NCBI RefSeq assembly: GCF_006345805.1
Contig: NW_021832381.1
Span: forward strand, 62,001-126,000
Source: Octopus sinensis
Taxonomy: Eukaryota
Direction of reading: 5' to 3'
DNA: 64,000 nucleotides
Position numbers and translations under genes: made by a program. Of the stretch, positions 12,107 through 64,000 are shown piece after piece (position 1 is the first letter of the stretch; every line of letters begins with the position of its first letter). A model generated the notes under the pieces. That model saw only the letters and a list, made by a program, of their open reading frames with translations, did no database searches and was not told the DNA's origin.

Positions 12107-12127
12107 TCTTAATAATAAAATGGTATG

Positions 12128-12196: not shown

Positions 12197-12224
12197 CACA
12201 CCAACTTCAAATTGGCAATACGAT

Positions 12225-17311: not shown

Positions 17312-18060
17312 CTAGCTGCCCGCTAGATAAGTATAATCTCTCCAATACGTTGTCGGAAAAGACAACAAATTTAATGCATTTCCGCTTACGGAACAATAAA
17401 AATAACCCATTTCGCACCAAAATCTTGACAACGAATTTTTAGCATTCGAATTATTGACCATATCAATAAAAGCCTCTTGAATATTTTCATCGACTAAACG
17501 TGGATCAAGATCAAACAGTGTACAAATTAATTTCAAATCAATATTGCCCAGTTCTGGAAAGTATTTACTTACTTCTTTCTGAAAATATGTTAAATGTGCA
17601 TAAATAAGGTCAATTATTTTTTTGGTTTCAAATGCATCTATTTTTGCACTCTTCTTCAAAAGATTCAAGCATAGTAAAATCATTCAGTTTAACTTTTTCT
17701 TTTCACAGTTGTAACTTCATAACAAATACACTAATTTTTAACATTAAACAGTTAAAAAACTTAGTTCAATCCACAAAATCAACTATAGTTTCACGTCTCC
17801 CCTGAAGGGATTTGTTAAGTGAATTTATACAAGAAAAAAACATCTCAAGTAGACAAGCTATGAGATATCCATCAATTTCTAAATAAATTCTAATGATTTG
17901 GGATTGTTTGGGATTAAAATATTCAGATAATTCATTTTTCAAAAAAAACTTTGGCAAGGATGTTTCCTCAAATAGTCATCTCACTTTAGTGTGGAATAGC
18001 AGTTTTTCTTTCCCTGTCAAATTCTTCGCAAATTAGTCTGAAAATGTGAGAATGTAATGC
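17312..18060 (-). pseudogene. hAT (Buster/FAM200-like) transposase fragment
   Basis: LLFHTKVR*, SLNKSLQG, SKYFPE, FWCEM and LLSFPTTY; stops and frameshifts. Confidence 0.75.
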
Positions 18061-32198: not shown

Positions 32199-33950
32199 CA
32201 GTGTTTCCCAAACTTTTTCTTTTTGTTGCCCCCTTTAATAAACTTTTTAACAATATCGCCCACCATGAAAATTTACATGGAAAAAAAGAAAAAAATAAAT
32301 TTATAACAACAATCAATGAGAACAATAACGTTTTATGAATTTAGAAACAAGTTCTTCTGCATTTGGCTTTATGTTCGTAAGACGAAGCCGTAAATCTCCT
32401 CTCTCAGTAACGTCTAAGCGTTTCGACTTTTGGTAACAAGTTAAGATACAACTCTAAAGCTTCTCTCGACCAAGTAAGAAGCAGGAAAAGCAATAAAAAA
32501 ATAATTTAGCTTTCTCCCATAATACAGGATTTTCCAGGAATATCCGCCTGGAGCCAAAAACCCTAAATCTAACCCTTGTTAAAATGTTGGTTTCAATTCC
32601 CAATCATTTTTCAATACAATTAGTTCCAGTTGACAACAAGATTCGACGTCGTCGATATCTTGAAAAAAATCTATGATCCAGTCCGGAACTTCTAGTTTGC
32701 ATAAATCTTTGAAACGCTGCTTCACATCATTTTCAAGAGTGATTAAATGTTCAACATAATTTTCGAGATCGTCTTCAGAAAGTAGGTTTTTAAGATTGTA
32801 AGACGTGGGAATTTGCTTAACTCATTTCTACCAATATTTCTACAAAACAAGGATAATATTGAAATAAAAGCAGTAATGAGTGACTTTGCATAAATTAGAA
32901 TAATATGAGAAAAATTAACGAATACCTTTATTAAGTTAGTATCGGCGAATTGTAGTTGTGCGTTAAGTAAATTAAACTTAGCAAAAAATGTCTGCTAAAT
33001 AAGCAACATCATGTTTAACAGATTCTAGTTCTAGACCAAAGTGAGAGTTCAAAGATTTGAAGAATTCAACCACAGTGTCGAAGAAAGAGAATATACGTCC
33101 CAAATTGTCACCCTTTGATAACCACTTTACTTCTGTATGCATTAAAAGTCGTACAAAATCTTCATTATCGACACAAAGCTGGTAAAAAAACGTGAATTTA
33201 GCGAATTTGATTTAATTTTGTTAATAGAAGAAATAACTGTATTAAGAAAAGAATATAATTGAGCAGTTGTGTTTTTAGCAACTAAATGCTGCGGATGGAT
33301 CACACAATGAAAAGTCAGTACAGTTGGTACTTGTTGTTTTGGGAACACCATAAAACCACGATAGCAACCGATCATGGAAGGTGCCCTATCAGTTGCACAG
33401 GCAACTATATTCGTTATTGGTATATTTTTAAGAATCAAAAATTCGTTAACTGTGTAGAACATTGATTTCCCTTTATTATCGGTTTCTAGCATTTGTGCAA
33501 AAAGTAATTCCTGCATAACCCGGCCATCTTTGACAAAACGTAAATGTGCAAGTAACAAAGAGTCATTTCCAGGAAGTATTGACTCATCTAACTGTAGACT
33601 AAAATGCGTATTTTTCAATATCGAACACAAATTGTTTTCTACATCGAATGCCATGTCATCGATACGTCTCTGTACCGTGTTGGTACTTAGTGGAATCGAC
33701 TTAATGATATTCTGATGTGGTTGGTGCATAACCGTTGTCAGTACTTCGCGAATTGATGGAATTAGAAGTTCGCCAATTGTGTGAGGTTTACCAGATTTAG
33801 CGATGGGTAAAGCAATATTATATGATGCAATAAGACCATCATCATTCCTTCTACAATCAGCAGTAAATATATTTGCCCATTTCTGTTGATTTTTGTATTT
33901 TGTGAGTAGTCCTTTAAAATTTTGGGTTAGGAAAGTTTTTTATTGACCAG
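32199..33950 (-). mobile_element. hAT (Buster/Charlie, SCAND3/ZBED-like) transposon, 5'-truncated
   Basis: One TIR, CAGTGTTTCCCAAAC, at 32199. SGKPHTIGE, PLSTNTVQRRI, FSLQLDES, CATDRAPSM, HCVIH and RGDLRLRLTNIKP; disrupted. Confidence 0.85.
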
Positions 33951-34169
33951 TTATTTCAAGATTTGATTTTTAATTAAATAAAAATATAATGTTTTTTTTA
34001 ATATTTTATACACAAATCATATAAAATTAGTTATTTAAAATTTAAAAAGCACTTTTGAAGGGTATGTTGGTTTTGTGTATAATAAAATCAGAAACAGCTT
34101 TGGAAATTATTTAAACATGGTCTAATTTATTGTATGACTATTTTCAAAAAAATTTACGGACTTTTCAGC

Positions 34170-36330
34170 ACTTTGCTCTAATCCGGCAGCTTAAAGAATT
34201 CATCAACTTCGACCATCATCTTATTACAGTGTTTTTCTTCCGAGCAAACACTTTTAGGTCGTCCATAAAAACAGGCACATTCTCCTCCTCTCCAATTGAT
34301 TGTCACTGATCAAATTGTATGCCTCAATTTTTTGTTTACGGATTAACTTACAAGTTACAGTCCGACCCCCAAATGGGGCACCAAGTGCCCCAAATGCGGG
34401 GGTGCCCCAAAAACAGGGTTTGTTATTTTTTAAAAATTAAACCATTAATAAACATCAAAAAACATTTTTACTAAAATATTCAGTTATTTTCTTTTTATTT
34501 GTAGAGTTTTGTCTGATATTGTTCGTCAATTTCAGCCGAAAATCAAAAAAATCTCGGAGCATACTTGGTGCAACATTAGAAATTTTTTCTTCTAAATTGT
34601 TAAGCAGATCTTTTGTTTTTGCTACGACATTTTCACTATTTTCGGTTTCTGAATATGTATCATAAACATTATTGTTCATGTCTTCGCATTCTCCATCAAT
34701 TGTTTCGTTAACAACTTGATCTAAATGTTCATCTGTTAGACAGTTTTTTGTTGCATAAGAATCACGGTTCCTGTCGATTTTCTTCCAACAATTAACAATA
34801 CTTTTAGCATCTATTTTCTCCCATCCTTTTGAAATTAGCATCATAACCTGACGCAAATTTAATTTACCAATAGAATGTGTAAAATCGTTTTCGAAATCTT
34901 GAAAACATAAAAATTCCATTAAGAAAGAGGAATAATAATCTTTAAAAATCTTGATTATTCCCATATCCAAAGGTTGTAAATAGGGCGTTGTATTTTTCGG
35001 CAAAAATAAAAATTCGATGTTCGAACATTCGGCAGTTTTATGGCATCCCGCATTGTCAAGTATTAATAATATTTTTCTGTTGTTTTTGCAAAACGATTCA
35101 TTATAAGTGTAAGCCAACTCATAAAAGTCTTTCCAGTCATCCATGCATTTTGAGAAGATGAATACAATAACCAAAATCTTGAACATCAAAATTTTTTAGA
35201 CACCGAGGTTTTTATATTTTCCAATAATCAATGGATTAAGTTTTTCCCGATTAAACTGCAGCATAGAAGAACAGTGAGTCTTTCTTTCCCTTGTTTATAA
35301 CCAAAACACGGTTCGCCTTGTTCAACAAATGATTTTTGAGGAGTTCTTTTTTAAAAAGCGCAGTTTCATCACAATTAAATATATTCTCAGGTCCATATTT
35401 TAATACTTTCTGGTCATATTTTTCAAAATAATTTTTCACATAAGATAAATCACATGAAGCTTTTTCACCACATATTGACTTGAATTGAAGTTCATGCCGC
35501 AATTTAAATCTATCAAGCCACCCATTGGAAGCTTTAAAAGAAGTAAATCCAATTTTTGAAGCTGTAACTAAGGCAATTTTTTTCAAATAGGGCCTGAAAT
35601 CGGAATTTTATCTACGCGTAGTCTTTGAAATATTTCAAAGACTTGATCATCAAATTTATCTTTATCGGCTTTAAATGTGTCATATTCCTCAGAAATAGTA
35701 TTGCCGTGTTGCAAGAAAGGTACAATATTTCGTTTTATTCTTGATATTGTTCCTTTACTTGTGTTGTACTTTTTCATTAGTTGCCTCTCAGATAAATTTT
35801 TCTTCAAAATTTCTTTAGCAATCTTCAATTTAGTTTCGTAATCCATAACCACAACAATAAAAATATAAATTGAAAATAAAACAAAAAATAATTAATTTAT
35901 TATAATTTTATTTTATTTTTAATTCCTTATAAATGATTTTATGGTGCCCCAAAAATTCCATAATTTTTTATCGATTTTTTTTTTTTCTGCCAAAATGTAC
36001 TTTTGGAATAAAGTGCCCCAAATTGCGGGGGTGCCCCAAAATCCGAGGGTGCCCCACCCCTGGGGTCTGCCCCATTTTGGGGTCGGACTGTATATAGATT
36101 TGAGATGCAAGTAATCGGCCTCAGATCATTGGTTAAGTCACAAATTCCTTTTTTTGGAATGAGAGAGGTAATTCCGGTGTAGACCAACTCATCAGGTGTA
36201 TACTTTCCATATATAATCTCCGTGACTTTCTTACAGAGGTCATCGTGGACTGCACTGAAATTTCTTAGAAAAAAATTGTATATGCCATCACATTCGCAGA
36301 CGCTCTAATTTGGCAGCTGTTAATGATTTC
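34170..36330 (-). mobile_element. R4-like RT fragment interrupted by the pogo element
   Basis: CDGIYNFF..LIPKKG..RPITCISNLY on one side, and ISDNQL and FMDDLKVF on the other side of the TA insertion. Confidence 0.7.
34358..36090 (-). mobile_element. pogo/Tigger-type Tc1-mariner transposon with frameshifted transposase
   Basis: 23-bp TIR CAGTCCGACCCC(C/A)AAATGGGGCA and TA TSD; HTH/CENP-B (KASNGWLDRFK) and DDD motifs (IFNCDETAL, LILDNAGCH, LQPLDMGII) spread over three ORFs. Confidence 0.93.
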
Positions 36331-36643: not shown

Positions 36644-36969
36644 TATCAATATTGGGTCAAAATGTGTCTCAATTCGTCACTAAATGATTTACTCGTTTTG
36701 TAATTATTAGTTGGTGGTGTGACCAACTCGAGTTCCTTTTTAAGTTTGGCAAGCTTTGCGTTCATAATTCCGATACGCTCATTTCTTTTACTGCGTCATA
36801 TGCTCATAGATGATGTCAGCCCCAGTCGAGGCATTTATACCAGCCAATATTTTTTTATTGAAAAACTGAGAGGGAATTCATCTACTTCCTCACTGGCTTT
36901 TCTTTTTAATTGATTCGTAGGTAAATCATTTAGTGACGAATTGAGACACATTTTGACCCAATATTGATA
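36644..36969. mobile_element. MITE with 49-bp perfect inverted repeats
   Basis: 36644-36692 is the exact reverse complement of 36921-36969; the outermost TA may be a TSD; no coding capacity recognised. Confidence 0.85.
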
Positions 36970-37591
36970 GACCCTTAGGTAGCGTTTCACAAAGCTCAGT
37001 CAGAAACAAAAAAAATTTGAACGTACCACAAGTATTATGTCGCGTCCCATGGTGGTTACGCATCCCATGCTGGCTACATGTCACCTGTCAATCAATCATT
37101 TTTACGAGGTCATTGGCTGTCAGATGTCATAATTAATGTGGTTTAATCATTCGTTACTCGTTTGGGCATATTTAATATTTTTAGCGTTATTATTCAATTT
37201 TCAACTCATTGGCCATCATGCGCGGAAATTGCCAGTCGATCCGCTGCGCATTTTAACTTTTTTCGTTTATTAACAAGTTATTTAAAAAAAAAATTTTCAA
37301 CATGTCCTCTTTAAAATGTATTCCCCTGTATATGTAATATGTCGCGAGCGACCGAGCACAGCGAGCGACCAATCTAGATGCGATCAATCAAAAAATATAT
37401 AAATTGACAAATACCGTTGAACTATTGAATTGTTTATTTTCTATGTAACAAACTCGTCACTAGATTAAAAGGGGGAGAGAAAAGCCAAACGAAACCAAGG
37501 AGACGGAAGAAACAAGTTTGTTTGCTGATTGGGGTCAACTCTAATGGGACACCAGATGTCCCTTCGATAAAAATAACGACCCCTTGCACCA

Positions 37592-40154
37592 CTATTTATT
37601 TAAGTGATGCAACAGTTTTTCAATGGATCGTACCGATCTCTCCAGCTCTGGGGTTAGTTTGGATTTTAAGTCCAAGCCATGTGCCAGTTTAATGGCATAT
37701 CTCCGCGTTTTCTCCAAAAGATCAATATGTTTCTTTCCTTCGCAGCTTCCTAACCATCCTTGAGATCCATAGATCAGGAAGGGTTCTATACACGCAGAGT
37801 ATACGTATAAGAACGTTTCCGGTTTCAGCTGGAATCGCATCAGAGCTTTCAATATTTGGGTAGCCTTGTTCTTTCTCTTCCTTATATACATCTTGAATGA
37901 ACCAGTTGCATCCACAACTATTCCGAGGTATTTAAGATCCTCCACGGGTTTTATCGCTCCGGTGTTAATACAAACATCAGGTTTTCTTCTCCTTTCACCA
38001 ATCCAACAAACAGTGCTTTTTTCAAAAGATAAAGACAAGCCTTTATCCTGGCACCATTTGCCAATTTTTTCGATATGACTATGGGTTCTTTTCCACGATA
38101 TTGATTTGCTCATAGAGAAATCCATAATTAAAATATCATCTGCGTAGATGACCATCTCCATGCTAGGGAGATCCACTTGAGGAATGTCGCACATCACACA
38201 GTTAAATAAAAGTGGACTGATGACAGATCCCTGCGGAACTCCTCTCTTAAGCAAAATTCTCTTCGATAATTGGTTTCCGACCCGTACAAACGATTCTCTT
38301 CCCGAGAGGAAACTCTTCATCCAAACTAGGGCTGTCTTTCCAACGTTAAAATTGTATAAAGTTCGTAATAGCCCGGCATGCCAGACGCTATCAAATGCTT
38401 TTGATATGTCTAGAAATGCAGCCGTAAGATACTCTTTTTTCCTTTGTGCTGTAGATATGGCCTCCTTTAACAGTGAAAAGCAATTTCCAGTGCCCTTGTT
38501 CCGCCGAAAACCCCATTGCTCTTTCAAGAGATACTGTTTATCTTCAATATAAGTTGATAGTCTTTTAAAGACAATTTTTTCCATGATTTTTGAGATAGAA
38601 CATATGAGACTGATTGGTCTGTAATTTGCAGGATCCGAACTCGGTTTTCCTTTCTTCGGGATCATGCGAACAATTGTCCTCTTCCATGCTTGGGGAACAT
38701 GTCCAATACTCCACGAAGAGTTAAATAACTTCCATAGTTCATATAATAAAGGCATTCCCGCCTTTTTGAAGGTAATCATCGGTATGTAGTCCCAACCAGG
38801 GGATTTATTTTTTACATTCGTGTATTGCTAATTTGATTTCTTCCATAGAAATAGCTCCACATAATGGTCCCTCCGTAAGCGATAGTAACTCCCAAATACA
38901 CGTCTCATTTTGTATAGTCTGAGAAATCATAGACAAAGGGTCCACTTCTTGAATCTTAGCTAGCTGCTCTTTTAACTTCTCAGGTACTTCCTCTCTTGGA
39001 ATCAGATTGCCATCATTGGACTTGAGTTTTATCTCTCCACCCTTTTTATCAGAACTCATCTTTGAGAAAAGTTTCCAAAAATTCGGATTTTTATGAAAGA
39101 GTTTAGAGCATTCTTTTTTCCAGCTCTCCTCTACTATATCTTTAGATAATTCCTCTGATAAGTTTTTAATCGATTTTATTCTTTGTTTGAGGAAGATAGC
39201 GTCTTGCGGGTCCCAACACCGCTTTAGTTTACTTTCCAAGTTCCTTTTTTCACGAAGTAGTTTGGATTGCTCTTCATTTATCAATCGATTTTTGTACGAG
39301 AAGAGAAACCTCTTTTTTCCATAGTCCTCCAGATAACTTCGAATAATGTTTCTCATTCTTTCATCCAAATAATTGATCTCGTCAAGATTTAGTATTTTCA
39401 ATTCTTGAGTATTTGCCAATTTCATAGACATATAAAAGTTAAAATGATTCCAATTAATGTTGCTGATATTATAACCAAGAAATACATCCTCAGTGAGAAC
39501 TGCTCCCGTTCTTAGTTTCATCGTTTGCGGAAGATGGTCACTCCCAACATCATTTTCAACATAAGGCCGGTCACACAAACCACTTAAGGCATTTGCAACA
39601 ATAAACAATCCTAATCGATCACCACCTTGCTGCTGAAAGTGGTTAAGCTCTTCAGATGTTAAAATTTGAAAATTTGAGGTTTTTTTGATCTCAAGTAAAC
39701 AATTTCCATCCTGATTTGACTTCACGCACCCATATGCAGTATGCTTCGCATTTAAGTCTCCAACAAGAATTGGATTTTCATTTCCTTCCATAAAATTTTT
39801 GACAATCGACGAATAATCTTTCAACCTTTTGAAGTATATACCTCCAACGGTTATCCATCCAATAGAAGTTTTTAAATCAATGGATGCTAATTCACGTACA
39901 TTCTGTTCAATTATTCTTGGATTCCGAATGTCAATAGACTTTTTGTAAAATATTGATGTTCCTGTGCCGGCGTTAGCACCAAAATGCCAAGGAATATCAA
40001 TCGAGCTGTATCCAGGAATAGTGATACTTCCAGACTTCTTCATTTTCGTCTCGTTAATGATAAATACATCCATCTGAACTGTGCTGATAAGAGCTATCAG
40101 CTCTGCTGCCCGCTTTCGAAGAGAGCGGGCATTAACCAGGGTAATTTTGGTCAC
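37592..40154 (-). CDS. Element A ORF2, AP endonuclease plus reverse transcriptase
   Basis: NARSL, INETK, GDLNAKH, SDHLP, YRPISL, QWGFR, DISKAFDSVWH, GVPQGSVISP and YADD. One +1 frameshift in an A-run near 38805. Confidence 0.9.
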
Positions 40155-41164
40155 GTTTGATTTATTTGGTGGCTGCTTCCCTCTTTTAGGAGAGCCACCA
40201 AACCGAGTAAAAACTTGGCATCTTTTTTAGTTCTGGTCATGTCCTTAATAGATCTTTCGAGCTCACTAATTAAGTCAGCTCGAGGTCGACCCGTCATTGA
40301 CCCAGCTCCTGAAGTCGACAAAGTCTGCACCGCCGAGTGAGATATAGTCGTTTCCTCTGTCTGTGTTCCAACTTCAACTGTTTTCCTAACTCTTGGAACG
40401 TTCCATCCCGCCCATGGCTTCAAGGGTAAATTTTTTATGTCTGTTTGGTTGATTTTAGCATTCGCCGAAGCTTCTTTTAACAGTTTCTGAACCAGAATTT
40501 TATCATTTTTCAGCTTTGAAGCTTCTTTAGCTTTCTCACAGCCCCGATAATTTGCCAAGTGGCTCGAAGAACCGCAGTTGACACATTTTTTCATGTTAGA
40601 GTCCTTGCAATCTGTTCCAGCATGTGTACCCGAACAAAATAGACATTTCTCCTGATTTTTACAGAAGCGTGCTATGTGGCCAAACCCTTGGCATCGATAG
40701 CACTGGACTTCCGGTTTTCTGTACCACTCGGCCTTTACATTCGAAAAGCCAATCTTTAGCCCCAATCGTACAAGCGATTGAGCTTCTCCATGATCAGAAG
40801 TTACCAATTTAATGATAGGGAGTCTCACTCCCCTTTTCTCAAAGCGTTCGAGAGTCATTTTTCCTTTCACTTTGCCCTTCAGGAAGTCTTCGAGTTCCTC
40901 AATTTCGATCCAAGTTGGGACATTTTTTAGAATTATTGCCACTGGCCCGAATTTCTTATTTTTGAGAGACTGGCCTCCCTCTCCAAAAGGTTTGCTTTCT
41001 TCTAATTCAATTTGAAAGTTTTCCACATCTTTTTCGACTTTGAAATTCAGTAGGAAATCTCCTGACTGTCGGCGAGAGACTCGTGCCTTCTTGATCGATT
41101 TCATGTTGCATAGCGTGTTAAAAATATTAATAGATCCCATCGAGGGGTTATTGACTTTAAGCAC
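40151..41164 (-). CDS. Element A ORF1, gag-like nucleic-acid-binding protein
   Basis: CYRCQGFGHIARFC, CLFCSGTHAGTDC and CVNCGSSSHLANYRGC; the N-terminus is truncated or frameshifted. Confidence 0.9.
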   Translation of the reverse strand: MLKVNNPSMGSINIFNTLCNMKSIKKARVSRRQSGDFLLNFKVEKDVENFQIELEESKPFGEGGQSLKNKKFGPVAIILKNVPTWIEIEELEDFLKGKVKGKMTLERFEKRGVRLPIIKLVTSDHGEAQSLVRLGLKIGFSNVKAEWYRKPEVQCYRCQGFGHIARFCKNQEKCLFCSGTHAGTDCKDSNMKKCVNCGSSSHLANYRGCEKAKEASKLKNDKILVQKLLKEASANAKINQTDIKNLPLKPWAGWNVPRVRKTVEVGTQTEETTISHSAVQTLSTSGAGSMTGRPRADLISELERSIKDMTRTKKDAKFLLGLVALLKEGSSHQINQT

Positions 41165-41229
41165 AACAGTAATGTTCCTCCAAACTTGTTTTCATATGAT
41201 AAATGCTCGTTTTCTGTCTACAAATACCG

Positions 41230-42715
41230 TTGAATGAATGAATGAAGTTTATTGTAATTAACAGAGAAAGAGAAAGTGACAGGAATTAAGGACGGTGATA
41301 GGACGAGACTGATGCCAAGGCAACTGAACTCTTCTGAGCTTGCGTCCAATTCATCTGTCGTGAGCCAGAGTTAATGGTGGCTATGTTGCTGAATTGCTCC
41401 CTTCTAGCAGGAGCTCTTGCAGCATATCCATATCCACTCCAAGTAGGGTCAGGGCTCCTACACAACAGCGGAAGCATTCCAGTTGGGAATCTCTGTTGTG
41501 TAGGTCCTGATCCGAGTGGGGACCTCTTTGTGACAAAGCTTTGTCACGGTGGGTTTTTCTCCTCTTATGAGGGACAGGCGAGCGGACCACTTCTGAGTTA
41601 TGGCACTCATTAGTGGTTGTCTTCGAGTTTGTGAGTGTGCTGGGGGCCGGCGACGTCTGAGTAGAGACATCGACTTTGGACGGACTTCGGGGAGCCGCTT
41701 TTGTCCAGACTGATTTTATCGGTTCGGCTTTTACCCAGCGTACTGGGCTTTTTGTCTGTGGGCTCTTCGCAGCCCTTGAGGCTGCTGTTGCTGCTTTGGC
41801 AGACGGACATCCACCGTAGCACGCCAAGTGCCCAATGTTCTTGCAATTAATGCAAGTTTTTGCAGCTGGGACACTCGGTTTCGGCTTGGAACTCGGGCAG
41901 TTTTGGTGCCTGTGTTCTTTACCGCAGAGGAGACAACGGAGTTTTTCTGAGCATCTGTAGGACGTATGTCCAAACTGATTGCAACGGAAGCATCTCGTTG
42001 CTGAGGGCTTGTGCCATCCGCAGCGGATATGGCTGAAGCCCGCAGTTATTCCAAAGCGGATGAGGGTGTTGGCCTCGGCTCTGGAATCCAGCGTGAGTCT
42101 GCCGATAGGCATGTCGGTTCCATTGCGAGAGAATCTTTCGAACTTGAAGTCCGATTCTAGACTTTCTCTCAAGTGGAGGTTAAGATCCTCTGTCGAGATC
42201 CAATGAGGGATTCCTTTAAAGACCAAGACTGAGGCCTTCTCAGCTATTGAGGCAAGTTTATGGCCGCCTTCGCCAAACATATTCGATTGAGTCAGCTCTG
42301 CTTTGAACGCAGCAGCATCCTCTGGCGAACTGAATTTTAGAATGAAGGTGCCGGACTTCTGTAAGGTTATCCGGGCTATGGAAGCAGTTGGAGACTTGGA
42401 TAGGAGGTTAAACCTCTTGATCTTTCCAAGTGCCGAGTTTTCGATACTCAGAGAATATGTGAGGTTTGAGCTGTTAGCCTCAGTTGTCGTCTGATAGAAT
42501 TGGGTCTCACTGTGTTTTTGAGCCACAGTAGGGTTCGGAGGGTTCGGATGTTCGGTGGGATATTCAGGTTCGCAAAAGGGCTGTGGCTTGGCCGCTGTTC
42601 GTCCTTGAACTTTGGAGCAAGCTTTGATTGATTCGAGATTTTGTTTATTCTTGACCATTTTTTCTTTATTTTCCTTTACCATGCAACTGGATTCTCACAG
42701 CAATTCTCAAATACT
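41230..42715 (-). mobile_element. Array element A': ORF1-only (gag-only) LINE derivative
   Basis: Intact 433-aa ORF1 (41381-42682) with CFRCNQFGH, CLLCGKEH and CINCKNIGH, followed directly by a 150-nt 3' end ending in AATAAA..(TTCA)n; no EN or RT. Confidence 0.9.
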
Positions 42716-42725
42716 ACAAATACCG

Positions 42726-45142
42726 TTGAATGAATGAAGAATTTTATTGTAAGAAAGAAGAAACGAGACAGAAACTTAGTGCGGAAAAATAATTTTGACG
42801 AGACGATTGCTTTGGGCATTCGAGCTCTTCCATGGTTCGTCCGCTTTGTCTGTCTATGAGCAGGGACACCTGCTATTCTCCACGATCGATGAATAGGTCA
42901 GCCACTTTAGAGCGTTTCCGAAAAGTTCGGATAGAAGCCTCGATGGTTTGCCGTAGCTCTGGAGACTTGCTCTCCGCCCAGCTTGGGACAGGCTCCCATG
43001 GATTTAGCATATAGGCTAGTTTTAGAGCGTATCTCCGTATTTTTTCGCATTTTCGCAGAATTTTCTCATATTGTTTCGAGTAGAACCAAGCTTCCATACC
43101 ATACAGTAGGCTGGGCAAGATTGTTGCATGGTATACAAATAGGAAGGTATTTGGATTCAAGTGCATGCCTCTTAGAAGTCGGAGAGCGGCGATGGCTTTC
43201 CCTTTTCTCCGTTTGAAATGCAAATGGTATCTCGAGTTTGCGTCGATTGTGAGCCCCAGGTAACGTATGCTCTCAGGGCGAGCGATTTCCACCAAAGAGC
43301 CGGGTTTGCGATCTTGCGACTTTCTTGGGTTAATTTAGAGATATGCAGATTTGTCCATGGCCAGCGAGAGTCGCTTACCAATGCACCAATTCTTTATCTC
43401 CTCAATGTAGCCGGCAAGTCGTTTCTCAGAGGCATTGGTGTCCATCGAGGTGTCCAGAACGAGAACATCGTCTGCGTAGAGGAGTAGGGATGTCCTGGGA
43501 TCGGAGGGTGTGGGGAAACTGCTCATTACCAAATTGAAAAGGATTGGGCTGAGACAGGACCCCTGCGGAACCCCCCTTCGAAGCGAAATATATCTTGAGA
43601 AGAAGCCCGACTCAGAGATATAAGAGTAACGATTTGAGAGGAAGCAGCGCATCCAGAGAAAGACTTCCGCTGTTGGCTCACAGAGTTCGATCCTTTCCAG
43701 GAGGTCTCTGTGCCAGACGCTGTCAAAAGCCTTTGAGATGTCCAGACATACAAGAGATAAAGTTTCTTTAAACTCCATTGCTCTCGAGATGGTGGACTGT
43801 ACCGTAATGAAACAGTCACCGCAGCTACGTTCAGAGCGAAAACCCCATTGCTGCGGGAGCAGCACTTTCTTCTCTTCGGCGTGGAAGTCGAGGCGCTTGG
43901 CCATAATTTTCTCCATCAGCCTTGAGATAGTTGGGATTAGGCTTATGGGACGGTAGCTGTTAGCGAGATTCACCGGTTTCGCAGGCTTTTTGATCATCCG
44001 GACCTTCGAGATTTTCCATTTTCCCGGCACATGGCCCCACTTGAGACTTGCCGTAAACAGATCCGCGAGGAACACATGTAGGTCTTCGGGTGCTTTCTTA
44101 AACAATCGCATCGGTATTTTGTCATGGCCCGGTGCGTTGCCTTTTGACGAACGGATGGCCCAGGTCACCTCTGCAATGGTGATCGGGTGATGGTCCGACG
44201 ACAGTGGGCGCGGCAGTGGCTCCGACTCCCGGTTTTGCAACGTTTCCGGATTGGCCTCCTGGATAGTGGCCAGGTGTTCTGCGAATATGTTTGGCATCTC
44301 TTGTGGCGAGGCGGGCATACCAGACTGGTTGCACAACCTCGGGGGTGAGGATTTTCCTTCGAGGTTAGCCACTTTGTGGAAACAGTCCCAGAAATTTGGG
44401 TTTCTGTAGTCCAGGTTTTGACAAGCCTTCTACCATTTCCTGGCTGCTTCCAGCTTTGTCGCGACGTGGACCTTATACCCAATTTCCGAGATCATGTTCC
44501 TAAGTCTTCCCCTGTCAGCTGGGTCCACACAGCGTTTGAGTTTATTTCTCAGCCGCTTCCTTTCGTTGAGGATGATCTTCACTTTCACGCTCGGAGTGGT
44601 CCTCCGTGCGCGGTCTGCACTTGGCAATTCTCCGTACGACGTTAGATACTGAAGCATGAATTTGCTTAACTTATCGCTTGCGGAGTCGATGTCGAGGGCT
44701 GAGTTATACCCAACAGGGCGACCGTTGTCGTGCAGGAATGCACTTATGAAGCTCCTGTAGTGTGGCCAGTTGATCTTTGAGAGATTGTAGTGAGAGGAAA
44801 TGTGTTCTTGTCTAACAATGCTAGTGTGAATTTTGATCTCCATTGGTAGGTGGTCACTTCCGATATCGTCAAGCACTGTAGGCTTTTCCATAAGGTTAGC
44901 GACAGAGTGAGAACAGATGCACAGGCACAGGTTGTCCCCGCCAAAGGGCGAGTGGTGGTTCGGGTCTTCGGATGTCCTGACGAAAACACCAAGCTTGTCA
45001 GTGACCTTCTTCAGTGTTCGACCATCTTGGTTGGTTAACCGACATCCAAACGCCGTGTGCTTCGAGTTTAAGTCTCCGATAAGAAGGCAATGAGCTATGC
45101 TTGAGAAGAATTCGTCAATCAATCTGATGCAGGGGGGGAGAT
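42726..45142 (-). mobile_element. Array element B: 5'-truncated LINE (partial EN plus RT)
   Basis: Begins at GIYLPP within EN; GDLNSKH, SDHLP, YRPISL, GVPQGS and YADD split over three ORFs; ends in AATAAA..TTCAA. Confidence 0.9.
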
Positions 45143-46702
45143 AAATACCGTTGAACGAACGAACAGATTTTATTGACTTAGCAACCGAAAGAGAAGAGTT
45201 TTATGAAAAGGTTTTATTTAAAATCGAGACACCGGAAGCCTCCTCCTTGCTTTCCTATTCACTTCTCATGCCCTTTGCAATGAGCAGAGGACTTGCCAAA
45301 TGTTTTGAGTTTGTTCGTCTAGCTCTCTGGGGAGATCCTGATCAAGCCGTAGCTTATACGCCAGTTTAATCGCAAAGCGCCTTGTTTTCTCCAGTTTGGT
45401 GATTATGCGATTTCTCTCGTCTGTAGGGTACCAACCTTCATGTCCATAGATAAGGACTGGTTCTACAGTCGCCTTATAGATGAAGAGAAAGGTGTCTGGG
45501 GAGAGATGGAAGCGTATAAGGCTTCTCAGGATCCCGGAACATTTCCTTCTTCTAGATTCCACGAACTTAAGGAACGATCCGTCAGCCCCGATCGTTACCC
45601 CAAGGTAGCGTAGGTCGTCAGTGATTCTTAGTCCCATTGTCTCCAGAATTGGTTCTCTTTCTTTCCGAGTTTTAGAAACCCACGTGATGGTGGACTTGTC
45701 TCGTGCTAAGGAGAGGGCTTTCTCCGTAGCCCAAGACTCAACCCTCGCTATATATTCCCTCAGGCTTTTCCAAGAGAGGTCCTTGGATCGCGACAGATCC
45801 GTAACCAATATGTCGTCCGCATAGATAATTAGTAGACTCTCCGGATTTACTGGTTTCGGGATGTCGGCAACGTATAAGTTGAAAAGTAGAGGGCTCAGGA
45901 CCGACCCTTGAGGCACTCCCCTCCTTAGATTGATTGTATCCGAGGTCCGGTTACCACATCTGATAAAAGACTTTCGCATGTGTAAGAAATTCTCTAGCCA
46001 TTTGACAGTCCTTTGCCCCGGATGGATACTGATGATCCTTTCCAGGAGGCCTACGTGCCAAACGCTGTCGAACGCCTTTGAAATGTCCAGACAAACAGCT
46101 GTCATCCCCATCTTGTGTGTAAGGGCCCTCGAGATTTGCGTTTCCAGTTGGGCAAAGCAGTTTCCACAAGACTTCCCACGTCGGAAACCCCATTGTTCTT
46201 TAGCCAGGTAACCTGACTCCTCCACGAGAATAGATAATCTGTTAAAGATTATACGTTCCATGATTCTTGATATGGAGCAGATGAGACTTATGGGTCGGAA
46301 ATTTTCTGCACGGTCTTTAGGTTTCCCTGCCTTTGGAATCATTCGTACCACGGTTTTCTTCCATGCATTCGGGACGTATCCAGTCTCCCAACTGGCATTG
46401 AAAAGTATCGTTATTATCTTGACTAGGCTTATCGGGGCCTCTTTGAAGACTCGGATGGGTATGTAATCAAAACCCGGTGCGTTGTCCTTGCATCTTTTAA
46501 TTGCTAGTAGGGTTTCATCAAGGGTGATTGCGTGACAAAGTCGACCAGGGGACATTTTCGCAGAGGCTATTGCCCTCTTTTTATCGTCCACTAGCTCGGC
46601 AGCTCGCTTCGCTCACCGCGACCTAGCTCCTGCGGAGGGCCTGTTTCATCAAACAACTATAAGTTTATGTAGATGTATAAAACTACCTGGTTTAATGTAA
46701 CC

Positions 46703-47134
46703 CTATTCTATCGCCTGTTGATAAACGATGTTTGTCGTCCGTCCTTCCTTGGCATATATGAATAAATTTTCTCTTCTGCCTACCCTCGAGCATCCCACAT
46801 ACAGCTGTCCATATGAAAAGCACTCACTCTCTAAAAATAACCCAACTACCTTTAATGACTGTCCCTGGGCCTTGTTTATTGTCATTGCAAAACTCATCCT
46901 CAAAGGAAATTGCAGCCTTTTAAATCTAAATGGTAATTCATCAGAAATTATCGGAATTCGTGGAATATAAACATCCTCACCTCTATACTTACCTGTTAAT
47001 ATCGTCGCCTCTATTACGTTAGCCATCAAATTTTTGATAACTAACCTCGTTCCGTTGCATAATTTAGGTGGCGCAAGATTTCGTAATAAAACCACTGGAA
47101 CGCCTATCTTTAACTTTAAAAGATGATTCGGCAT
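46703..47134 (-). pseudogene. Helitron PIF1-like helicase C-terminal remnant
   Basis: [55 protein letters not shown]; no Rep domain. Confidence 0.88.
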
Positions 47135-47974
47135 TCCAGAGGGATCTAAGGAGTTTAAAAATTCAATCCGGTTGAATTTTTAGAAAATAACAAAAAATAA
47201 AGAAAAACAAATAAAAATGAATAATTTAAAAACAAAAAATAAAAAAAACAAAAAAAAAACTTTAAAAATTTGTAAAATAGTATAAACAAAAAAAATCTCT
47301 GCCGCCACGGCAACAACCAGTCTAATTTTTTAACAGCCAATTAAGATAATGCTTAAGAGCCTTTATAGTCCGGAGATTTAGCTTAGTGACCTTGATTAGA
47401 CAAACCACTGGCGGAAATGGGGCAGCCGGAGATGGGGCAGGCAGAGTAGCAGCAGCCAAAAAAGCGACACACAAAAAAGATTTAATTAATTACCTTAAGC
47501 TGACCGTTTTTTCTTCAGCTTCGTTTTTCCTCCTTCGGTTATCTATTTAAAAAATTATTTTTGAATAATAAAAAAGTTTAGGAAAAGAGGCATACCGAAA
47601 ACAAATTCTATCTTTACGAAAAACTTAAGTAAATAGTTAATATTTTTACGCAAATTCTTCTGATTGCGCTGTCAATTGGTGGTAAATTGTGTTAATGATT
47701 GTGCTAATGTGGTTTTAACTATCAAAGTGTTTTTCAAAATCTGTTAATTGCACACTCTATTCAAGGTCGTGCAATCTGTAATTGCACATTCTGTCAAAGT
47801 CAAATATGATAATAGCTATAATTTTGATTCATGGTCGATAATGATATATGCATTTAATTTTAAAGAGAAAATCATAGGATGAATTAAATTTCTTTATCGC
47901 GAATAATTGGGAGTTCATCATTGTTAATATTCTCGCTGTCGTTTTCATCAAGGATATTCTTAATACGTGAGATT

Positions 47975-48870
47975 TTTGCCTCGAAGGTTTTAATGGACCT
48001 CATCATGAATGTCGAGGACATTAACGTTATTCATTTTAATCAAATGCAGAAAATAATTTTTTGATTTTTTGGCGGGAAGGTTTTAAGGACCTCATCATGT
48101 AAGTCGAGGACATCGTAGTTGTTCATTTTAACCAAAATGCAGAAAATTTTTTTAATTTTTTTTGGGGGAAGGCTTTAAGGACCTTATCATGTAAGTCGAG
48201 GACATCGTAGTTGTTCATTTTAACCAAAATGCAGAAAACTTTTTTTTTAATTTTTTTTGGGGGGAAGGTTTTAAGGACTTCATCATGTAAGTCGAGGACA
48301 TTGTAGTTGTTCATTTTAACCAATATGCAAAAAAATTTTTTTTAATTTTTTTTGGGGGGGAGGTTTTAAGGACTTCATCATGTAAGTCGAGGACATTGTA
48401 GTTGTTCATTTTAACCAAAATGCAGAAAATTTTTTTTAATTTTTTTGGGGGGGAAGGTTTTAAGGACCTCATCATGTAAGTCGAGGACATCGTAGTTATT
48501 CATTTTAACCAAAATGCAGAAAATTTTTTTTAATTTTTTTTGGGGGGGAAGGTTTTAAGGACCTCATCATGTAAGTCGAGGACATCGTAGTTGTTCATTT
48601 TAACCAAAATGCAGAAAATTTTTTTTAATTTTTTTGGGGGGGAAGGTTTTAAGGACCTCATCATGTAAGTCGAGGACATCGTAGTTGTTCATTTTAACCA
48701 AAATGCAGAAAATTTTTTTTTTAATTTTTTTTGGGGGGGAAGGTTTTAAGGACCTCATCATGTAAGTCGAGGACATCGTAGTTGTTCATTTTGACCAAAA
48801 CGCAGAAAAATTTTTTTTAATTTTTTTGGGGGGGAAGGTTTTAAGGACCTCATCATGTAAGTCGAGGACA
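47975..48870 (-). repeat. About 94-bp minisatellite, 9 units plus a degenerate unit
   Basis: GTCGAGGAC at 48011 (degenerate), 48103, 48195, 48291, 48386, 48480, 48575, 48669, 48766 and 48861. Confidence 0.95.
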
Positions 48871-49474
48871 TCGTATTGCCAATTTGAAGTTGGTGTGCAC
48901 ACACAGACAGACAGACAGACACACAGACAGACAGACAGACACACACCATACCATTTTATTATTAAGATTATATCTGTCGGGACAAAACAGCTCGGGTCGA
49001 CATCTTGAATTTTCGCCAGTTGTTGACGTAAAGCGTCAGGTACATCGTCTCGGTTGATGGCATAGCCATTTTCTGTGGTTAAATTGATTTCATCTCCTTT
49101 GCATTCCGTTTCCTTTAGGCGATATGCCTTCCAGAAACTTGGGTGTCTTCGATTAAGCTTAAAACATTCCAATCTCCAAGCTGAGTCAATGTTTTCTTTA
49201 GACCTTTTGTCGATCCTCTTTTTAAGAGAGGAAATCATTGCTCGTAGGCGTGTGCAGTCTGTTGGGTCAAAACATCTGCGTAGCCTCTTCTGGTATCTTG
49301 CCTTTTCTTTCAGGAGACTCACTACTGTGTCGTCGAGTTCATGAGTCCCTCCACCAGAGTGTTTAATGAACTTTTTCCTGGAGAACTTCTCCAAAGAAGT
49401 GTTGATAAGATTCCTAACGAGCTAGTCCAGACTTTCAATTTGTTTTGTCTCGTGTGGGACGCGACATATTAATA

Positions 49475-51241
49475 ATGTCTGACATCTTCAATATCAAAAA
49501 AAGTATTTTAATTAGACATGATTTTTCCATTAATTTGTTGTATTGCGGTTTAATACGTTTCTGTATTAATTTTATCTGAAAATTTACGCCTGGGTGTAAT
49601 TTGATTAATGGGGAAAATTAATTCTATATTATTACAATTTTTGTTCAAAAACTCATTAATTATAGCAACAATTTTATGTGCGCTGTTTGGGATTGGAATT
49701 GGAATTTATTTGAGAACATTTTCGTTATCACAAGATGTTATAACATGGATTGGTTATTATTATTTCTAATACTGTTTAATTAAATAGGCATTCCCGGGGA
49801 ACTTTTTTACCGTGCTTTAAACATGCTAGTACTTCCTTTAATAATTCCTAGCATATTCGTGGGTGATTATATATTTATTATTATTTTATAGCCATTTCAG
49901 AGATGAAACCTTCTGATAGCACAAGAACGATAGGAATTGTTTTCGGTTATGGAATATTAATTAACATTATTATGAATTTTATTGCCTTTGGATTTACATT
50001 GATTATAAAGCCAGGAAGTACGACTTCTAAAATGACTTATAGCGAGAAACAGTCTTAATCAGACTGGAACATTTGATGATGTTTATTCAACAAAACTAAT
50101 CATTTCTGACATCATGGCCGATTTCCTAAGGTATATAATGGTCAAATATTGTAGAAACCTAATTCCTGATAATTTGGTTAGAGCATTTTTTTCGTCTGTA
50201 ATTATTTAACTGTAAAAAATTTTAGGCTTTGACGGTTACTAAAAATACCTCTTCTGGAATACTTGAAAAACATCTAACAGAGACTGAAGGAAGCAACATT
50301 ATCGGTAAAGTATTTCTCTTTTTTTAGGTCTTGTATTTGCAACAATTTTGTTTGCAATAACTGGAAATTATATTCTGACAGATGAAATTTCTCAGCTCAT
50401 CATGGTTGTTTCTGGATTTCAAAAAATTGTCATTCATCTTTTTTCAAAATTATTTACGTATTTATTAATAAAATCGTAGAATAATGCCGGTGGGAGTAAT
50501 GTCAATCGTTGCTAGTACGATTATACAGGCTTCGGATATTGAAACTATTTTTTTTTCTCTTGGATATTTGATTATTACAGTTATATCAGTATTGTGTGTT
50601 CAAATGTTTGTTTTTATTCCATTCACAATTTATTTGACAACTCGCAGGAATCCGTTGTCTATTATGGCAAATTTTATAGAAGGCTTTTTAGTTTCTATTT
50701 CAACTTCATCAAGGTTCTTTTAATAAAGAAAATAATTTAGTCTAAGTGGAGTCCCTAAATTGTCAGAAGGACTTATAAATGCCTTTGAAACTGATTCTAC
50801 TCAAGCAAATTCGGCTGTAGCTTTATCTGTCCCGCTATGTGCATCTGGTTCTAGTGCCTACATTACGTGTGCAATAATGTTTATTGCAAATCTTGTAAAA
50901 AAACCTTTCATGCTCGAACAAATAATAATTGCCATGTTTTTATTGTGGATTTTCGATGATTAGATTTCTGAACTCCATCTCGGTCATTGCTCTACCAACG
51001 ATTCCTAACGCTAGCATTGTCCTTGTAATAATCATTCTTAAATCATTTAATATTTCGACAAAGTTTGTCGGCTTGTTGTTTGCGATTGATTGGTTATTGT
51101 ATGTGATGTTATATAACTAATTCAAGGGACCGTTTAAGGACAGGAGTTAACTACTACAATATGTCAGTATGTTCTATTATTGCCTGCAAATATTCTAACA
51201 TTAATATGAAACGTGATAAACACCCGGGAACTATGTTGTAG
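49475..51241 (+). CDS. Divergent SLC1 / dicarboxylate-amino acid:cation symporter (EAAT-like)
   Basis: GIPGELFYRALNMLVLPLIIPS, DFLRNLIPDNLVRA, NIIGLVFA, IMPVGV, STSSR and FAIDWLLDRLRTGVN; eleven GT-AG introns, most 22-35 nt. Confidence 0.88.
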
Positions 51242-52619: not shown

Positions 52620-53240
52620 CAAGTGGAACGACTGTATCGCCATATGTTTTGTCGGATGTTTAAATGAGCTCAGATAAAATTTTCATCCTTAAGACGTGTC
52701 ATCACTTTTGCATTCCAGTCACATGCACGGAAAATGAGTGGCGAAGCATGTTATAGGCATGGCGTGATTGTAAGTCCACTATTATTTAACATTTATATGG
52801 CGGATATTCCAAAGCCAGAACACCAAATGGTAACCTTATTATTTATGCAGATGATGTGCTCATAACGAACATGTCTTGGAGACTGGTGGATTCACAACGC
52901 AGGCTTCTCAAACTAGTTTCAAGATTCAAAATTTGGTGTAAAGGGAAGGGTCTTTCTCTGGGATCCGAAAAATGTACAATTACTCACAAATCGAGGAAAA
53001 GAAATGAGATACAGGCTAATAATATAATATCGGAGTTTGTTCGGACTCAGAGTCTTCGTTATCTTGGAATCTTACAATGGAAAAATGATCAATGGATGCA
53101 TACTGGAGAAAAAAGGGCAACAAGAATCTTATCGACTTGAATAACGATACGCTTGTTTACATTTATAAGAATGTGTTCAAACCAGGAATTTTATATGGAT
53201 GCAAAAGTTGGAAAATGGGAAGAAGCTAATTTATGATGAC
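52620..53240 (+). pseudogene. Degenerate LINE RT related to the array family
   Basis: SPLLFNIYMADIPKP, WCKGKGLSL and LRYLGI, with frameshifts. Confidence 0.65.
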
Positions 53241-56416: not shown

Positions 56417-57794
<1,378 letters not shown>

Positions 57795-60859: not shown

Positions 60860-63800
60860 CGAACCTATTCAGGTAACCCGTGAGGACGGCTGGCGTACCG
60901 TGGGGAAACCCAAACGTGTCGCTTGTCGTCCAATTTCTAACAACTTAGGTTCTAGCAATTCGTCTTCGGAGATGGATCCGCCTCCGAAGAAGACCGCTCG
61001 CGCCGGGGGTAGAATTACTTTCGGCGTGGTAGCACGACTAGAGGTCTTTCCCACTTGTGGAAAGGCCTCAGTCGTTAAAATCTTAGGGATTTTGGACTCG
61101 ATACAGCCGTCTAAGCGGTATCGAGTCCTGAAGAGGGAGCCCACCCAATTCCTGCTTGGGTGGGAGAAGTCTGAGGACTTTTCCAGTTTCGAAAGGGAGC
61201 TGGAAAAGTCCATCCCGTTCGGGCCTGGCATGCATCGGCTTGTCAGGTTCGAACGCAAGGTAGGGCAGGTAAGAGTCCTCCTCCTTGGGGTCCCCGGGAC
61301 TTCGAGGATAACGACCTTTTAGAACACCTGCAGCTGGAGTACCCCAGTGCCTCTGCCATTGCACGCTTCAAGCAAGGTTACCGGCCTCTTGAAGTGGTGG
61401 AGGTCACGCTGGGATCTCCTGCTGAAGCCGAGCGCCTCATACTGCTGGGTACGAGGGTTGGCTACGTCAGGCTTCGTGCTGTCCGGACCCGCCCGAAAGC
61501 CACCCAATGCTTTCGGTGTCAGGGTTTCGGGCACATAAGCACAGGGTTTCAGGACACGAGGTGTCCTGAGAAGGCGAAGTGCCTGAACCTGCGGTGGGGA
61601 GCATGGTCGCAAGGCATGCCCCTCGCCACCTACGAAGAGGTACTGTGTCAACTGTGGTAAGTTAGGACACAGTGCCAACTTCAAAGGTTGCCCCAAGTTC
61701 AAGGAGGCAACCCGAAAGGTAGGTGCGGGTGTAATCTCGAAGGTAAGTCGCGCGGCTAGCGTCGCAGCCCCTGGGGCACAACAACCTGGTGTAGCAAATA
61801 TGCTACATTGCAACATGGCTGAGGCCAAGAAGATCCTTGGCAAGGAACCGATATGATGCTCAACATTATATCGATGAACGCGCGCTCCTTGTCCGGTAAA
61901 GGAGACGCCGTTCAGAGGATGTTGGCCACCACGAGTGCGGACATTCTGGTGGTCAACGAAACGAAGGTAAAGGGGGGTCCGTACGTAGTTGATGGCTACA
62001 ACTGTTGTCACATACCTTGGAAACAGGGGTCAATATGTGGCACGGGAACTAGCCTCTTCTACAAGCCGTACCTCGCCTTGCAAAGTTCAGGTATATGTTC
62101 TTGTAGCCTATGCGAATTCCTTCAAGTAAGGATTCGTATAGGTAACTTTACATTTTACCTAGAGGCGATGTATTCGAAAAACTTTACGGCGTGTTCCTGG
62201 CACGTACGGGAGTTCTTTGGAAAGCATCCGAAGGCGATGGTTGTTGGAGACCTGAATGCCAAGCACATAGAGCTTGGTTACAGGGTAACCAATGCGCATG
62301 GTTTGGCTCTGAAAACTCTGGTTGAAGACCTCGGGCTGGAAATCCGGACTTCAAGTGAGCCAAACCACATCGATTCGCGAGGCGGACGAGACTGGCTAGG
62401 GCTTGCTCTGGTCAGTCCTGGAATGCTAAATTGGGTTAGTAAAACAATTTTATTGCCCAATATTGGAAGCGACCATCTGCCTCTATTGCACGAACTCCGC
62501 GAACCAGTCCCTCAAAGGGTTCCGGGATACTTCAACCTCCGGTCGGGTTCTTGGGCCAACCTGGAGAGGTTCATGGCCAGCAGGTTGCCCTCACTTCTGG
62601 TGGGGAATACCTGTGCCAATATACGTGAGTTGGAGGCGTTAGATAATGGAATCAATGCTGCCCTGACTGATTATATGCGAGATAATTTCAAACAGAACTC
62701 AGTGCAGGGTCAGTCACATTCCACGCTCCCATACCGGGTCTTAAATAAAATTAAGTTTAAGCGCCGGCTATCCAGACTACGGGACGAATGCGTTTACGAG
62801 GAAAACCGTGTTTGGTTTCGAGGCTGGATTAGCCGGCTTCAGAGGGAGATCAGAAGAGAAATCCGCGAACTCGAAAGTTCACGGTGGGAGCGAGCCTGCA
62901 GACGCGTAGACGCCCGCTTCCCGGACTTCTGGAAACAGTTGAAGAGCTTGTCGGGGAGAGGGGTAGCAAATTCAGTGCGCCTTAAACGCTCTGATGAAAC
63001 CCTTGTTTCGGACCCGGTTGAGGTGGCTGAAATATTTTCGACCCACCTCGATAACATCTCTGGAACTGAAGGAAGCCAGTTCGTGGAGACATCGTCCTTT
63101 GATACTGTCCAGCAGATGTTGTCGTGGGACAAGCGCTGCCAGCTGGGCATATCAAGGAACGATGCAAGCGACATTTCCGAAGCGGAGATTCTGGCAGCGA
63201 TCTCCCGAAGTAAGAACACTGCGGCGGGTCTGGACCGGATCCCTATGGCTATCTTTAAGAAGGCCCTGCCGTTGTTGATCACGGCTTTACAGGTCTTGTT
63301 TAGCGGGAGCTTGCGACTTGGGATGATCCCCTCTAGATGGAAAGTGGCTGAGGTAATCCTTATCGGAAAACCCAGGATGCCTCATGATGTCCCTGGGGGA
63401 TAAAGACTTATTTCCTTGCTTCCCGCTGTATCTAAAATTTTAGAAAGGATCATGCAACGAAGGCTCCTGGAGGAGCTGACGATGGTTGATGCCCTTCCTG
63501 AGTTCCAATGGGGCTTCAGGGAGGGTCGTTCGTGTGGAGACTGCTTATGGAAGGTGTCTTCTGAGATGAAGTGCGCCCTCCAGAAGAAGGAATGTGGTAT
63601 GCTAGTTAGTCTTGACATTGAAAAGGCCTTCGACTCGGTGTGGCACGACGGCCTCTGGAACTCCCTCACCACGTGTGGGGTTTCTCCGTGTCTAAGACGC
63701 TGGCTATCGGGGTTCCTTGAATCTCGCGGACAGGTCGTGCGGCATCAGGGGGTCTTTTCTAAAGTCAGAACAGTCCTTCGCGGGGTCCCTCAGGGCTCTG

Positions 63801-64000
63801 TGCTGAGTCCCACGCTTTTTAATGTCTTTATGGCATCTGCGCCCATGCCAGTCAATGCTCGTACTGAAATGGTAATTTATGCAGACGACATCATCCTCTG
63901 GGATCACTCGATGAAACCTGAGTGTGCGTGTCGTAGGCTACAGGTTGCTGTGGATGGACTTGTAAACTGGTGTGGGAGTAGGGGTCTAAAGATGCGTGCG
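60860..64000 (+). mobile_element. APE-type LINE related to the array family (ORF1 frameshifted; ORF2 61853 to window end)
   Basis: ORF1 CFRCQGFGH and CVNCGKLGH; ORF2 NARSL, VNETK, GDLNAKH, SDHLP, one in-frame TAA at about 63401, then DIEKAFDSVWH, GVPQGS and YADD. Confidence 0.9.

Follow-up and report, generated by a model that had tools for sequence, protein, structure and literature searches.

A polar array of four diverged LINEs sharing one 3′ junction motif, a probable product of repeated site-directed insertion

The 64,000-nucleotide (nt) stretch analysed here (the window; Octopus sinensis assembly GCF_006345805.1, contig NW_021832381.1, positions 62,001 to 126,000 of the forward strand) contains a polar array of four diverged long interspersed nuclear elements (LINEs), termed C, B, A′ and A, which abut on the minus strand and each of which is followed at its 3′ end by the same short motif, CGGTATTT(GT). 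A sequence-only reading had described the array in these terms, and four exact matches to the 13-mer TTCAACGGTATTT bear it out; the coordinates proposed there were right to within one base, the last motif lying at 37407-37416 rather than 37406-37416. On balance, the array was probably built by repeated site-directed insertion with an 8–10-bp target duplication.

Four LINEs and their shared 3′ junctions

The window contains seven exact copies of CGGTATTT; shuffled sequence gives an expectation of 2.08. The 13-mer TTCAACGGTATTT is found four times, on the minus strand only, and these four copies are the LINE 3′ junctions (Table 1): in minus-strand reading, the 13-mer stands at the end of each LINE 3′ untranslated region (UTR), and the next unit or the flank adjoins directly. 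The 8-mer after TTCAA is thus identical at all four 3′ ends of the lineage in the window (13 of 13 nt with TTCAA included). The full junction string is CGGTATTTGT at three of the four junctions and CGGTATTTAT between C and B, so that A and A′ are bracketed by 10 nt of motif on both sides and B by 8 nt. Taking the first junction as given, the probability that three further 3′ ends would carry the same 8-mer at the base composition of the window is ~8e-15, which rules out chance as the source of the shared junctions.

The 3′ ends of the array units have a common form, AATAAA-N5-8-(TTCR)n-TTCAA, with 13-19 nt between AATAAA and TTCAA. Their UTRs have diverged and the tails just before TTCAA vary (TTCAATAG, TTCATTCA or TTCGTTCG); the motif is invariant. 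Identity extends over ~26 nt (CTTCATTCATTCAACGGTATTTGTAG) at the B/A′ and A′/A junctions, and over 13 nt only at the remaining two. No conserved 3′ stem-loop was found on folding the four 3′ UTRs (z-scores 0.4-1.9).

The units are not copies of one another. Reverse transcriptase (RT) identity is 49% for A and C, 44% for A and B and 43-49% for B and C, the proteins of open reading frame 1 (ORF1) of A and A′ are 31% identical, and similarity at the DNA level is confined to short patches. These values rule out tandem duplication, as the earlier reading had maintained, and argue for independent insertions.

The proposed I/Jockey-type architecture is likewise upheld. ORF1 carries three CCHC knuckles in both A and A′ (CX2CX4HX4C, CX2CX3HX4C and CX2CX4HX6C), and ORF2 combines an apurinic endonuclease (APE) with RT: Pfam assigns Exo_endo_phos_2 / Exo_endo_phos and RVT_1 to A and B, and RVT_1 to C, and a YADD motif is present in the RT of all three. 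None of the ORF2 pieces matched an RNase H family, and no C-terminal Cys-His motif was found in the ~110 residues after the RT core of A, B and C, which contain at most one Cys.

Element A comprises ORF1 (~41164-40154), APE (40154-38805) and RT (38779-37592, with IYADD), with one frame break, between APE and RT. Element A′ had been counted among the LINEs of the array; it is a LINE piece with a motif junction, but it lacks ORF2. Its intact ORF1 (433 residues, 42682-41381) is followed by only ~150 nt of ORF2 end and 3′ UTR, and A′ is an internally deleted or ORF1-only element. In B, APE and RT share a single frame with two in-frame stops, and its 5′ junction reads AT plus CTCCCCCCC ahead of the start of homology. 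C, which had been taken for one continuous LINE, is in fact split by a nested 2.4-kb Helitron-like insert (48967-46591); its 5′ truncation falls within the APE–RT linker, and there it adjoins the flank ...ATATGTCGCGTCCCA without a motif copy. The small number of disabling mutations suggests that all four insertions are fairly young.

Every member of this lineage in the window sits inside the array: no further tail-bearing fragments or 5′-truncated copies were found elsewhere in the window, and none of its other LINE fragments has a readable 3′ end.

Table 1. Features of the array and of the rest of the window (positions in the window)
Feature	Position	Strand	Description
LINE A, near full length	37417..41219	-	ORF1, APE, RT; 3′ UTR ends AATAAACAATTCAATAGTTCAA
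Element A′	41230..42715	-	~33 nt leader, ORF1, ~150 nt end; tail (TTCA)3A
LINE B, 5′-truncated inside APE	42726..45142	-	C-terminal part of APE, RT (LYADD); tail TTCTTCATTCATTCAA
LINE C, 3′ part	45151..46590	-	RT ORF of 441 residues, no stop (IYADD); tail GTTCGTTCGTTCAA
LINE C, 5′ part	48968..49454	-	APE–RT linker of ORF2; 35% identity with A
TTCAACGGTATTT copies	37409-37421, 41222-41234, 42718-42730, 45143-45155	-	Exact matches; the four LINE 3′ junctions
Motif copy 1, CGGTATTT	45143..45150	-	Separates C and B; followed by AT, not GT
Motif copy 2, CGGTATTTGT	42716..42725	-	Separates B and A′
Motif copy 3, CGGTATTTGT	41220..41229	-	Separates A′ and A
Motif copy 4, CGGTATTTGT	37407..37416	-	After the 3′ end of A, before unique flank (CAATTTATATA...)
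Upstream flank adjoining C	49455..49471	-	Last 12-14 nt (TAATATGTCGCGTCCCA) inverted twice in downstream flank
Helitron-like insert in C, 2.4 kb	46591..48967	-	5′-TC...CTAG-3′, between A and T; not LINE sequence
Sister copy of Helitron-like element	12107-14651	+	92-99% identical; same TC/CTAG ends, A/T flanks, 95-bp array and Pif1 fragment
Ferredoxin-reductase-like gene	7816-8729	+	
USP-like gene	10034-10294	-	
SLC1/EAAT-like gene	49605-51117	+	
Other LINE fragments	109-507, 4827-5039, 52758-53211, 61074-64000		Identity to A, B and C no higher than 38%; outside the array

Probable repeated site-directed insertion and its rivals

Junction sequences, divergence among the elements, their common tail architecture and the bracketing repeats can be read directly; nick positions, the order of events and the pre-existence of the motif in the genome are inferred. 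According to the account that we favour, at least four separate events of target-primed reverse transcription, by four diverged families of one LINE lineage, would have taken place at this site. APE would nick the bottom strand immediately 5′ of CGGTATTT(GT) (putative target in context, TTCAACGGTATTTGT), and reverse transcription would start from the ...TTCAA terminus of the transcript. A motif-bearing read-through transcript might aid priming by annealing to the nicked strand; R1 read-through transcripts anneal to their nicked target strand and aid priming in this manner. A cut in the top strand 8-10 nt further downstream would then place the motif on both sides of the new copy and leave a fresh target, and the asymmetry of the site would give all copies the same orientation. 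For C, the copy at the 5′ edge, a blunt or recessed second-strand break would have left no upstream motif; the Helitron would have entered C later, and A′, having ORF1 only, would have used ORF2 protein supplied in trans.

Target duplication explains the common orientation, the brackets of 10, 10 and 8 nt, the invariance of the motif and its presence ahead of truncated B. Because B is truncated within APE and the motif nevertheless precedes it, the motif is not the 5′ end of an element. The microsatellite-like (TTCR)n tail stands where a LINE usually ends, which would place the motif outside the element, and an invariant motif beside variable tails is what would be expected if its copies descend from one genomic 10-mer. 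Comparable structures are known: double insertion of R1 at one site gives head-to-tail tandems split by a 33-nt duplication of ribosomal DNA (rDNA), and jockey tandems of the tail-to-internal kind, with different truncations, are documented (PMC5932611).

Several observations weigh against this account. Its weak point is a count: a pure duplication model predicts five motifs and four exist, one per element, with none 5′ of C on matching across the whole window. Three further copies of CGGTATTT (at 23149 on the plus strand, 27257 on the minus strand and 44112 on the plus strand) carry no element, compared with 2.5 such copies by chance, so that either the 8-mer alone is insufficient or the elements occupy far fewer sites than are available to them. 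For CGGTATTTGT, chance would give ~150 sites in a genome of ~70 Mb. All four junctions come from one locus and are not independent samples of the target. The flanks are unique DNA without an Rfam RNA gene, whereas most known site-specific LINEs use multicopy targets. Finally, an A-like LINE that is the sole close relative found (described in the next section) ends without CGGTATTT.

The count of motifs is met without any extra assumption if CGGTATTT(GT) is the RNA 3′ terminus of the elements themselves, or an obligatory read-through, and was never a pre-existing target here: four motifs for four elements, all of them 3′ and none upstream of C. An array could then arise by self-tail targeting, in which the endonuclease would favour a cut at or beyond the terminus of a copy already in place, much as L1 and Alu insertions pile up in poly(A) tails, or by the reverse transcriptase jumping from one RNA to the 3′ end of another in a single integration. 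The invariance of the 13 nt of TTCAACGGTATTT across families with 44-49% RT identity would fit functional constraint, an end 8-10 nt beyond TTCAA would still lie at a normal cleavage distance from AATAAA, and the end of the A-like relative, ...GTTTTGT, weakly resembles the end of the motif, ...TATTTGT. However, it would be unusual for a LINE to end in a microsatellite-like tail plus a fixed 10-mer, and the relative has a 3′ UTR homologous to that of A without the 8-mer. Template jumping among the RNAs of four families in one event is improbable and predicts a duplication around the whole array, where only a 2-nt CA is seen; self-tail targeting still needs recognition of the motif and differs from target duplication only in the origin of the first motif copy. 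We regard an own-terminus origin as the main rival, unlikely but deserving serious weight.

It is very improbable that the array is an assembly artefact in which separate LINE copies were joined through a short junction repeat. The ~26-nt identity at two of the junctions could confuse a short-k graph assembler, but the other two have only 13 nt in common, and a mis-join through the 26-mer would keep the tail-motif-head junctions real and permute only the order of the elements. The window is otherwise coherent, with consistent tiny introns and a Helitron with clean A|T boundaries.

Both flanks of the array are unique host DNA, and neither recurs in the window. In minus-strand reading, the 5′ flank near the array is ...GTCGCGTCCCA and the 3′ flank CAATTTATAT...; on the 5′ side of C, exons of the SLC1/EAAT-like transporter begin ~150 nt away on the plus strand. 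Two inverted pairs span the array (49460-49471 with 37335-37346, and 49455-49468 with 37036-37049). These short repeats suggest that the flanks originally adjoined each other and that the loss of target DNA was small, and the repeats may belong to a small palindromic element entered by the first LINE. Residence of the array inside a DNA transposon, in the style of Tx1L in Tx1D, was considered and rejected: the inverted repeats are only 12-14 nt long and the window has no second copy of either flank. No Rfam RNA gene reaches the gathering threshold anywhere in the window, permissive scans of both flanks gave nothing credible, and the joined empty site, with the flanks fused, folds no better than shuffled sequence.

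Polarity, the variable 5′ truncation of B and C, and the ORF1-only A′, which recalls HeT-A, would also suit a relic of telomere-like end healing as in HeT-A/TART, where one element after another joins its 3′ end to an eroding chromosome terminus that later becomes internal. This is the least probable of the explanations considered and close to negligible: ordinary host DNA with genes lies on both sides of the array, the inverted repeats of the flanks suggest earlier contiguity, terminal repeats are absent, and end healing, too, requires the motif to be the elements' own terminus.

A relative at a U2 gene and comparison with known LINEs

A homologue search with the RT of A in a collection of 5.8 billion proteins returned no match that exceeded 39% identity across most of the query, save one fragmentary gene model. 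The lineage thus appears to be at least poorly sampled, as judged from this protein collection. The best named matches, at ~28-35% identity, are generic ‘jockey-like’ or avian CR1-like proteins. An exact look-up of A′ ORF1 in protein records gave no match, and the contigs of the nearest relatives P0002 and P0007 show no motif at the 3′ ends. A metagenome scan with TTCATTCAACGGTATTTGT yielded six unrelated matches only, none of them from the genome of the window, a scan of genome and viral contig collections with TTCAACGGTATTTGTAG only chance bacterial or viral matches, and a scan of viral contigs for related loci one irrelevant match. In searches of PDB sequences with APE and RT, the endonuclease did not come out close to that of R1Bm, TRAS1 or L1.

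The fragmentary gene model, P0014, is the sole close relative; it is filed under Octopus sinensis and lies in a region termed L088 (NCBI GCA_006345805.1, VCDQ01001570.1:219581-249021). At ~8400-12177 of L088 is an A-like LINE with 46% identity to A in ORF1, 49% in APE and 57-60% in RT. Its 3′ UTR aligns with that of A as far as AATAAA, and the tail beyond differs (ACTTGTCTTGTTTTGT). The LINE ends in ...AATAAAACTTGTCTTGTTTTGT, adjoining base 1-3 of a complete U2 small nuclear RNA (snRNA) gene, which occupies 12178-12367, begins right after the LINE tail and matches model positions 1-192 with an Rfam score of 118.9 bits. The junction is represented by one copy only, and a chance meeting with the first bases of U2 is very unlikely. 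Comparison of the two loci suggests that precision at the 3′ junction is characteristic of the lineage and that the tail varies with the adjoining sequence, not with the family, and the LINE in L088 may represent a new U2-directed family. The known U2-targeting LINEs Keno and Utopia insert 38 nt into U2 and remove its first 38 bp (PMC4640811); their junction, at nt 38, differs from that at base 1-3 in L088. Just upstream of ORF1 of the L088 LINE, at 8324-8361, lies a 37-nt piece of its own ORF2 C-terminal coding sequence (11867-11904; 35 of 37 positions identical), which could be an odd 5′ junction or the remnant of a second copy.

Judged by architecture and junctions, the elements of the array probably add a new member to the sequence-specific APE-type LINEs, and by analogy the array may work like R1-type or Tx1-type site-specific LINEs. 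With the R1 clade (R1, TRAS, SART and Waldo) it has in common APE and a three-knuckle CCHC ORF1, and elements of this clade insert precisely at one sequence, as is proposed here; duplication of the target allows two copies in one site, as head-to-tail tandems split by it, for example in the R1 array with its 33-nt rDNA duplication (PMC5932611). However, the putative target here is a short motif in unique DNA, in contrast to rDNA, telomeric repeats or microsatellites, and its (TTCR)n tail differs from that of the R1 clade. A C-terminal Cys-His motif characterises the ORF2 of that clade, whereas ORF2 of the array ends ~110 residues past the RT core, a stretch that has a single Cys but nothing resembling this motif.

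LINEs of the Tx1 clade (Tx1L in Tx1D, Keno in U2, and Kibi/Koshi in microsatellites) are also APE-type; they are sequence-specific, with several families per target, as is proposed here, and Keno and the relative in L088 are both associated with U2 snRNA genes. By contrast, the Tx1 clade belongs to the L1 group, with another type of ORF1, and its multicopy targets have no counterpart in the array.

The Jockey and I groups match the array in knuckle pattern and in an APE-RT ORF2 without RNase H, and polar arrays with 5′-truncated members are found alike in the array, in jockey tandems and in HeT-A/TART, with an ORF1-only partner in HeT-A as well. Jockey, however, has a poly(A) tail and no fixed target, and I a (TAA)n tail, neither of which is matched by (TTCR)n-TTCAA; HeT-A/TART elements are joined to chromosome ends and need no target sequence, whereas the array has host genes and other repeats on both sides; and the hosts of Jockey and HeT-A/TART are arthropods, unlike that of the array. 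The ‘stringent’ LINEs of CR1/L2 type share with the array a short tandem-repeat 3′ tail after AATAAA, and the best named matches of the RT are in part CR1-like. The ORF1 proteins of the CR1 group are not known to carry the three-knuckle gag-like motif, nor is any member of that group known to be site-specific; the microsatellite tail fits CR1, but ORF1 does not.

Host genome, significance and neighbouring repeats

The host of the array appears not to be the octopus. The window has ~37% G+C and is repeat-rich, and its aspartate aminotransferase gene (56447-57791, plus strand) has GT...AG introns of only 15-27 nt. The genome of Dicyema japonicum is reported to have 36.7% G+C, 49% repeats, a mean intron of 38 bp and many copies of LINE ORF2 (PMC6736024). 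Because tiny introns, base composition and repeat content match this genome, the window would represent DNA of a dicyemid mesozoan, a parasite of the cephalopod kidney. The best match of the aminotransferase, at 58% identity, is a UniRef entry (P0121) filed under Callistoctopus minor, all other aminotransferases being at most 42% identical; this entry may be dicyemid DNA too. L088 is gene-dense with long exons, DnaJ, WD40, MFS, an RSE1/DDB1-type propeller and a metallophosphatase being encoded within ~20 kb and several unrelated genes lying within 8 kb. It has two repeat families in common with the window, the A-like LINE and an unclassified repeat, and is probably likewise dicyemid DNA inside the octopus assembly.

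Known sequence-specific APE-type LINEs belong almost entirely to the R1 and Tx1 clades and occupy multicopy ‘safe’ targets (PMC4640811). Tentatively, and with somewhat less confidence than we would give to an even choice, the data can be read as a Jockey-like lineage, probably confined to dicyemids, that evolved sequence specificity outside those clades. At least three autonomous families, with 44-49% RT identity, and an ORF1-only dependent would home to one 8–10-bp motif in unique DNA and regenerate it, giving polar arrays of mixed families, and a sister family in another dicyemid would have switched to the start of U2, its tail co-varying with the target. If this is true, it would be a third, independent origin of sequence specificity in APE-type LINEs, and a compact natural system for how the APE endonuclease and the 3′ tail jointly define a target: a target of 8–10 bp in unique DNA, common to deeply diverged families, with a sister apparently retargeted to the start of U2. 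It would also show how mixed-family LINE arrays, raw material for satellites, originate. Should the genome be that of a dicyemid, the transposon biology of that phylum would be characterised here for the first time: about half of a dicyemid genome is reported as repeats (PMC6736024), and no description of dicyemid transposons was found in the searchable literature.

The Helitron-like insert in C, a non-autonomous element, contains 9.4 copies of a 95-bp tandem repeat and the C-terminal fragment of a Pif1 helicase. Given the 92-99% identity between its two copies in the window, the family was recently active.

Among the remaining repeats, the LINE at 61074-64000 (plus strand) has an ORF1 and an intact APE-containing ORF of 516 residues, and its RT runs past the end of the window; with 27-38% identity to A, B and C, it belongs to a different lineage. 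Just downstream of the array lies a perfect 49-nt inverted repeat (arms 36644-36692 and 36921-36969, 228 nt apart), which looks like a miniature inverted-repeat transposable element or a foldback element. The minus strand carries transposase fragments of two kinds, hAT (Buster-like) at 33142-35586 and pogo/Tigger-type DDE_1 at 17312-17683. The unclassified repeat mentioned above lies at 4314-4701 of the window and has 75-80% DNA identity to L088 25706-26036 and 28737-28980.

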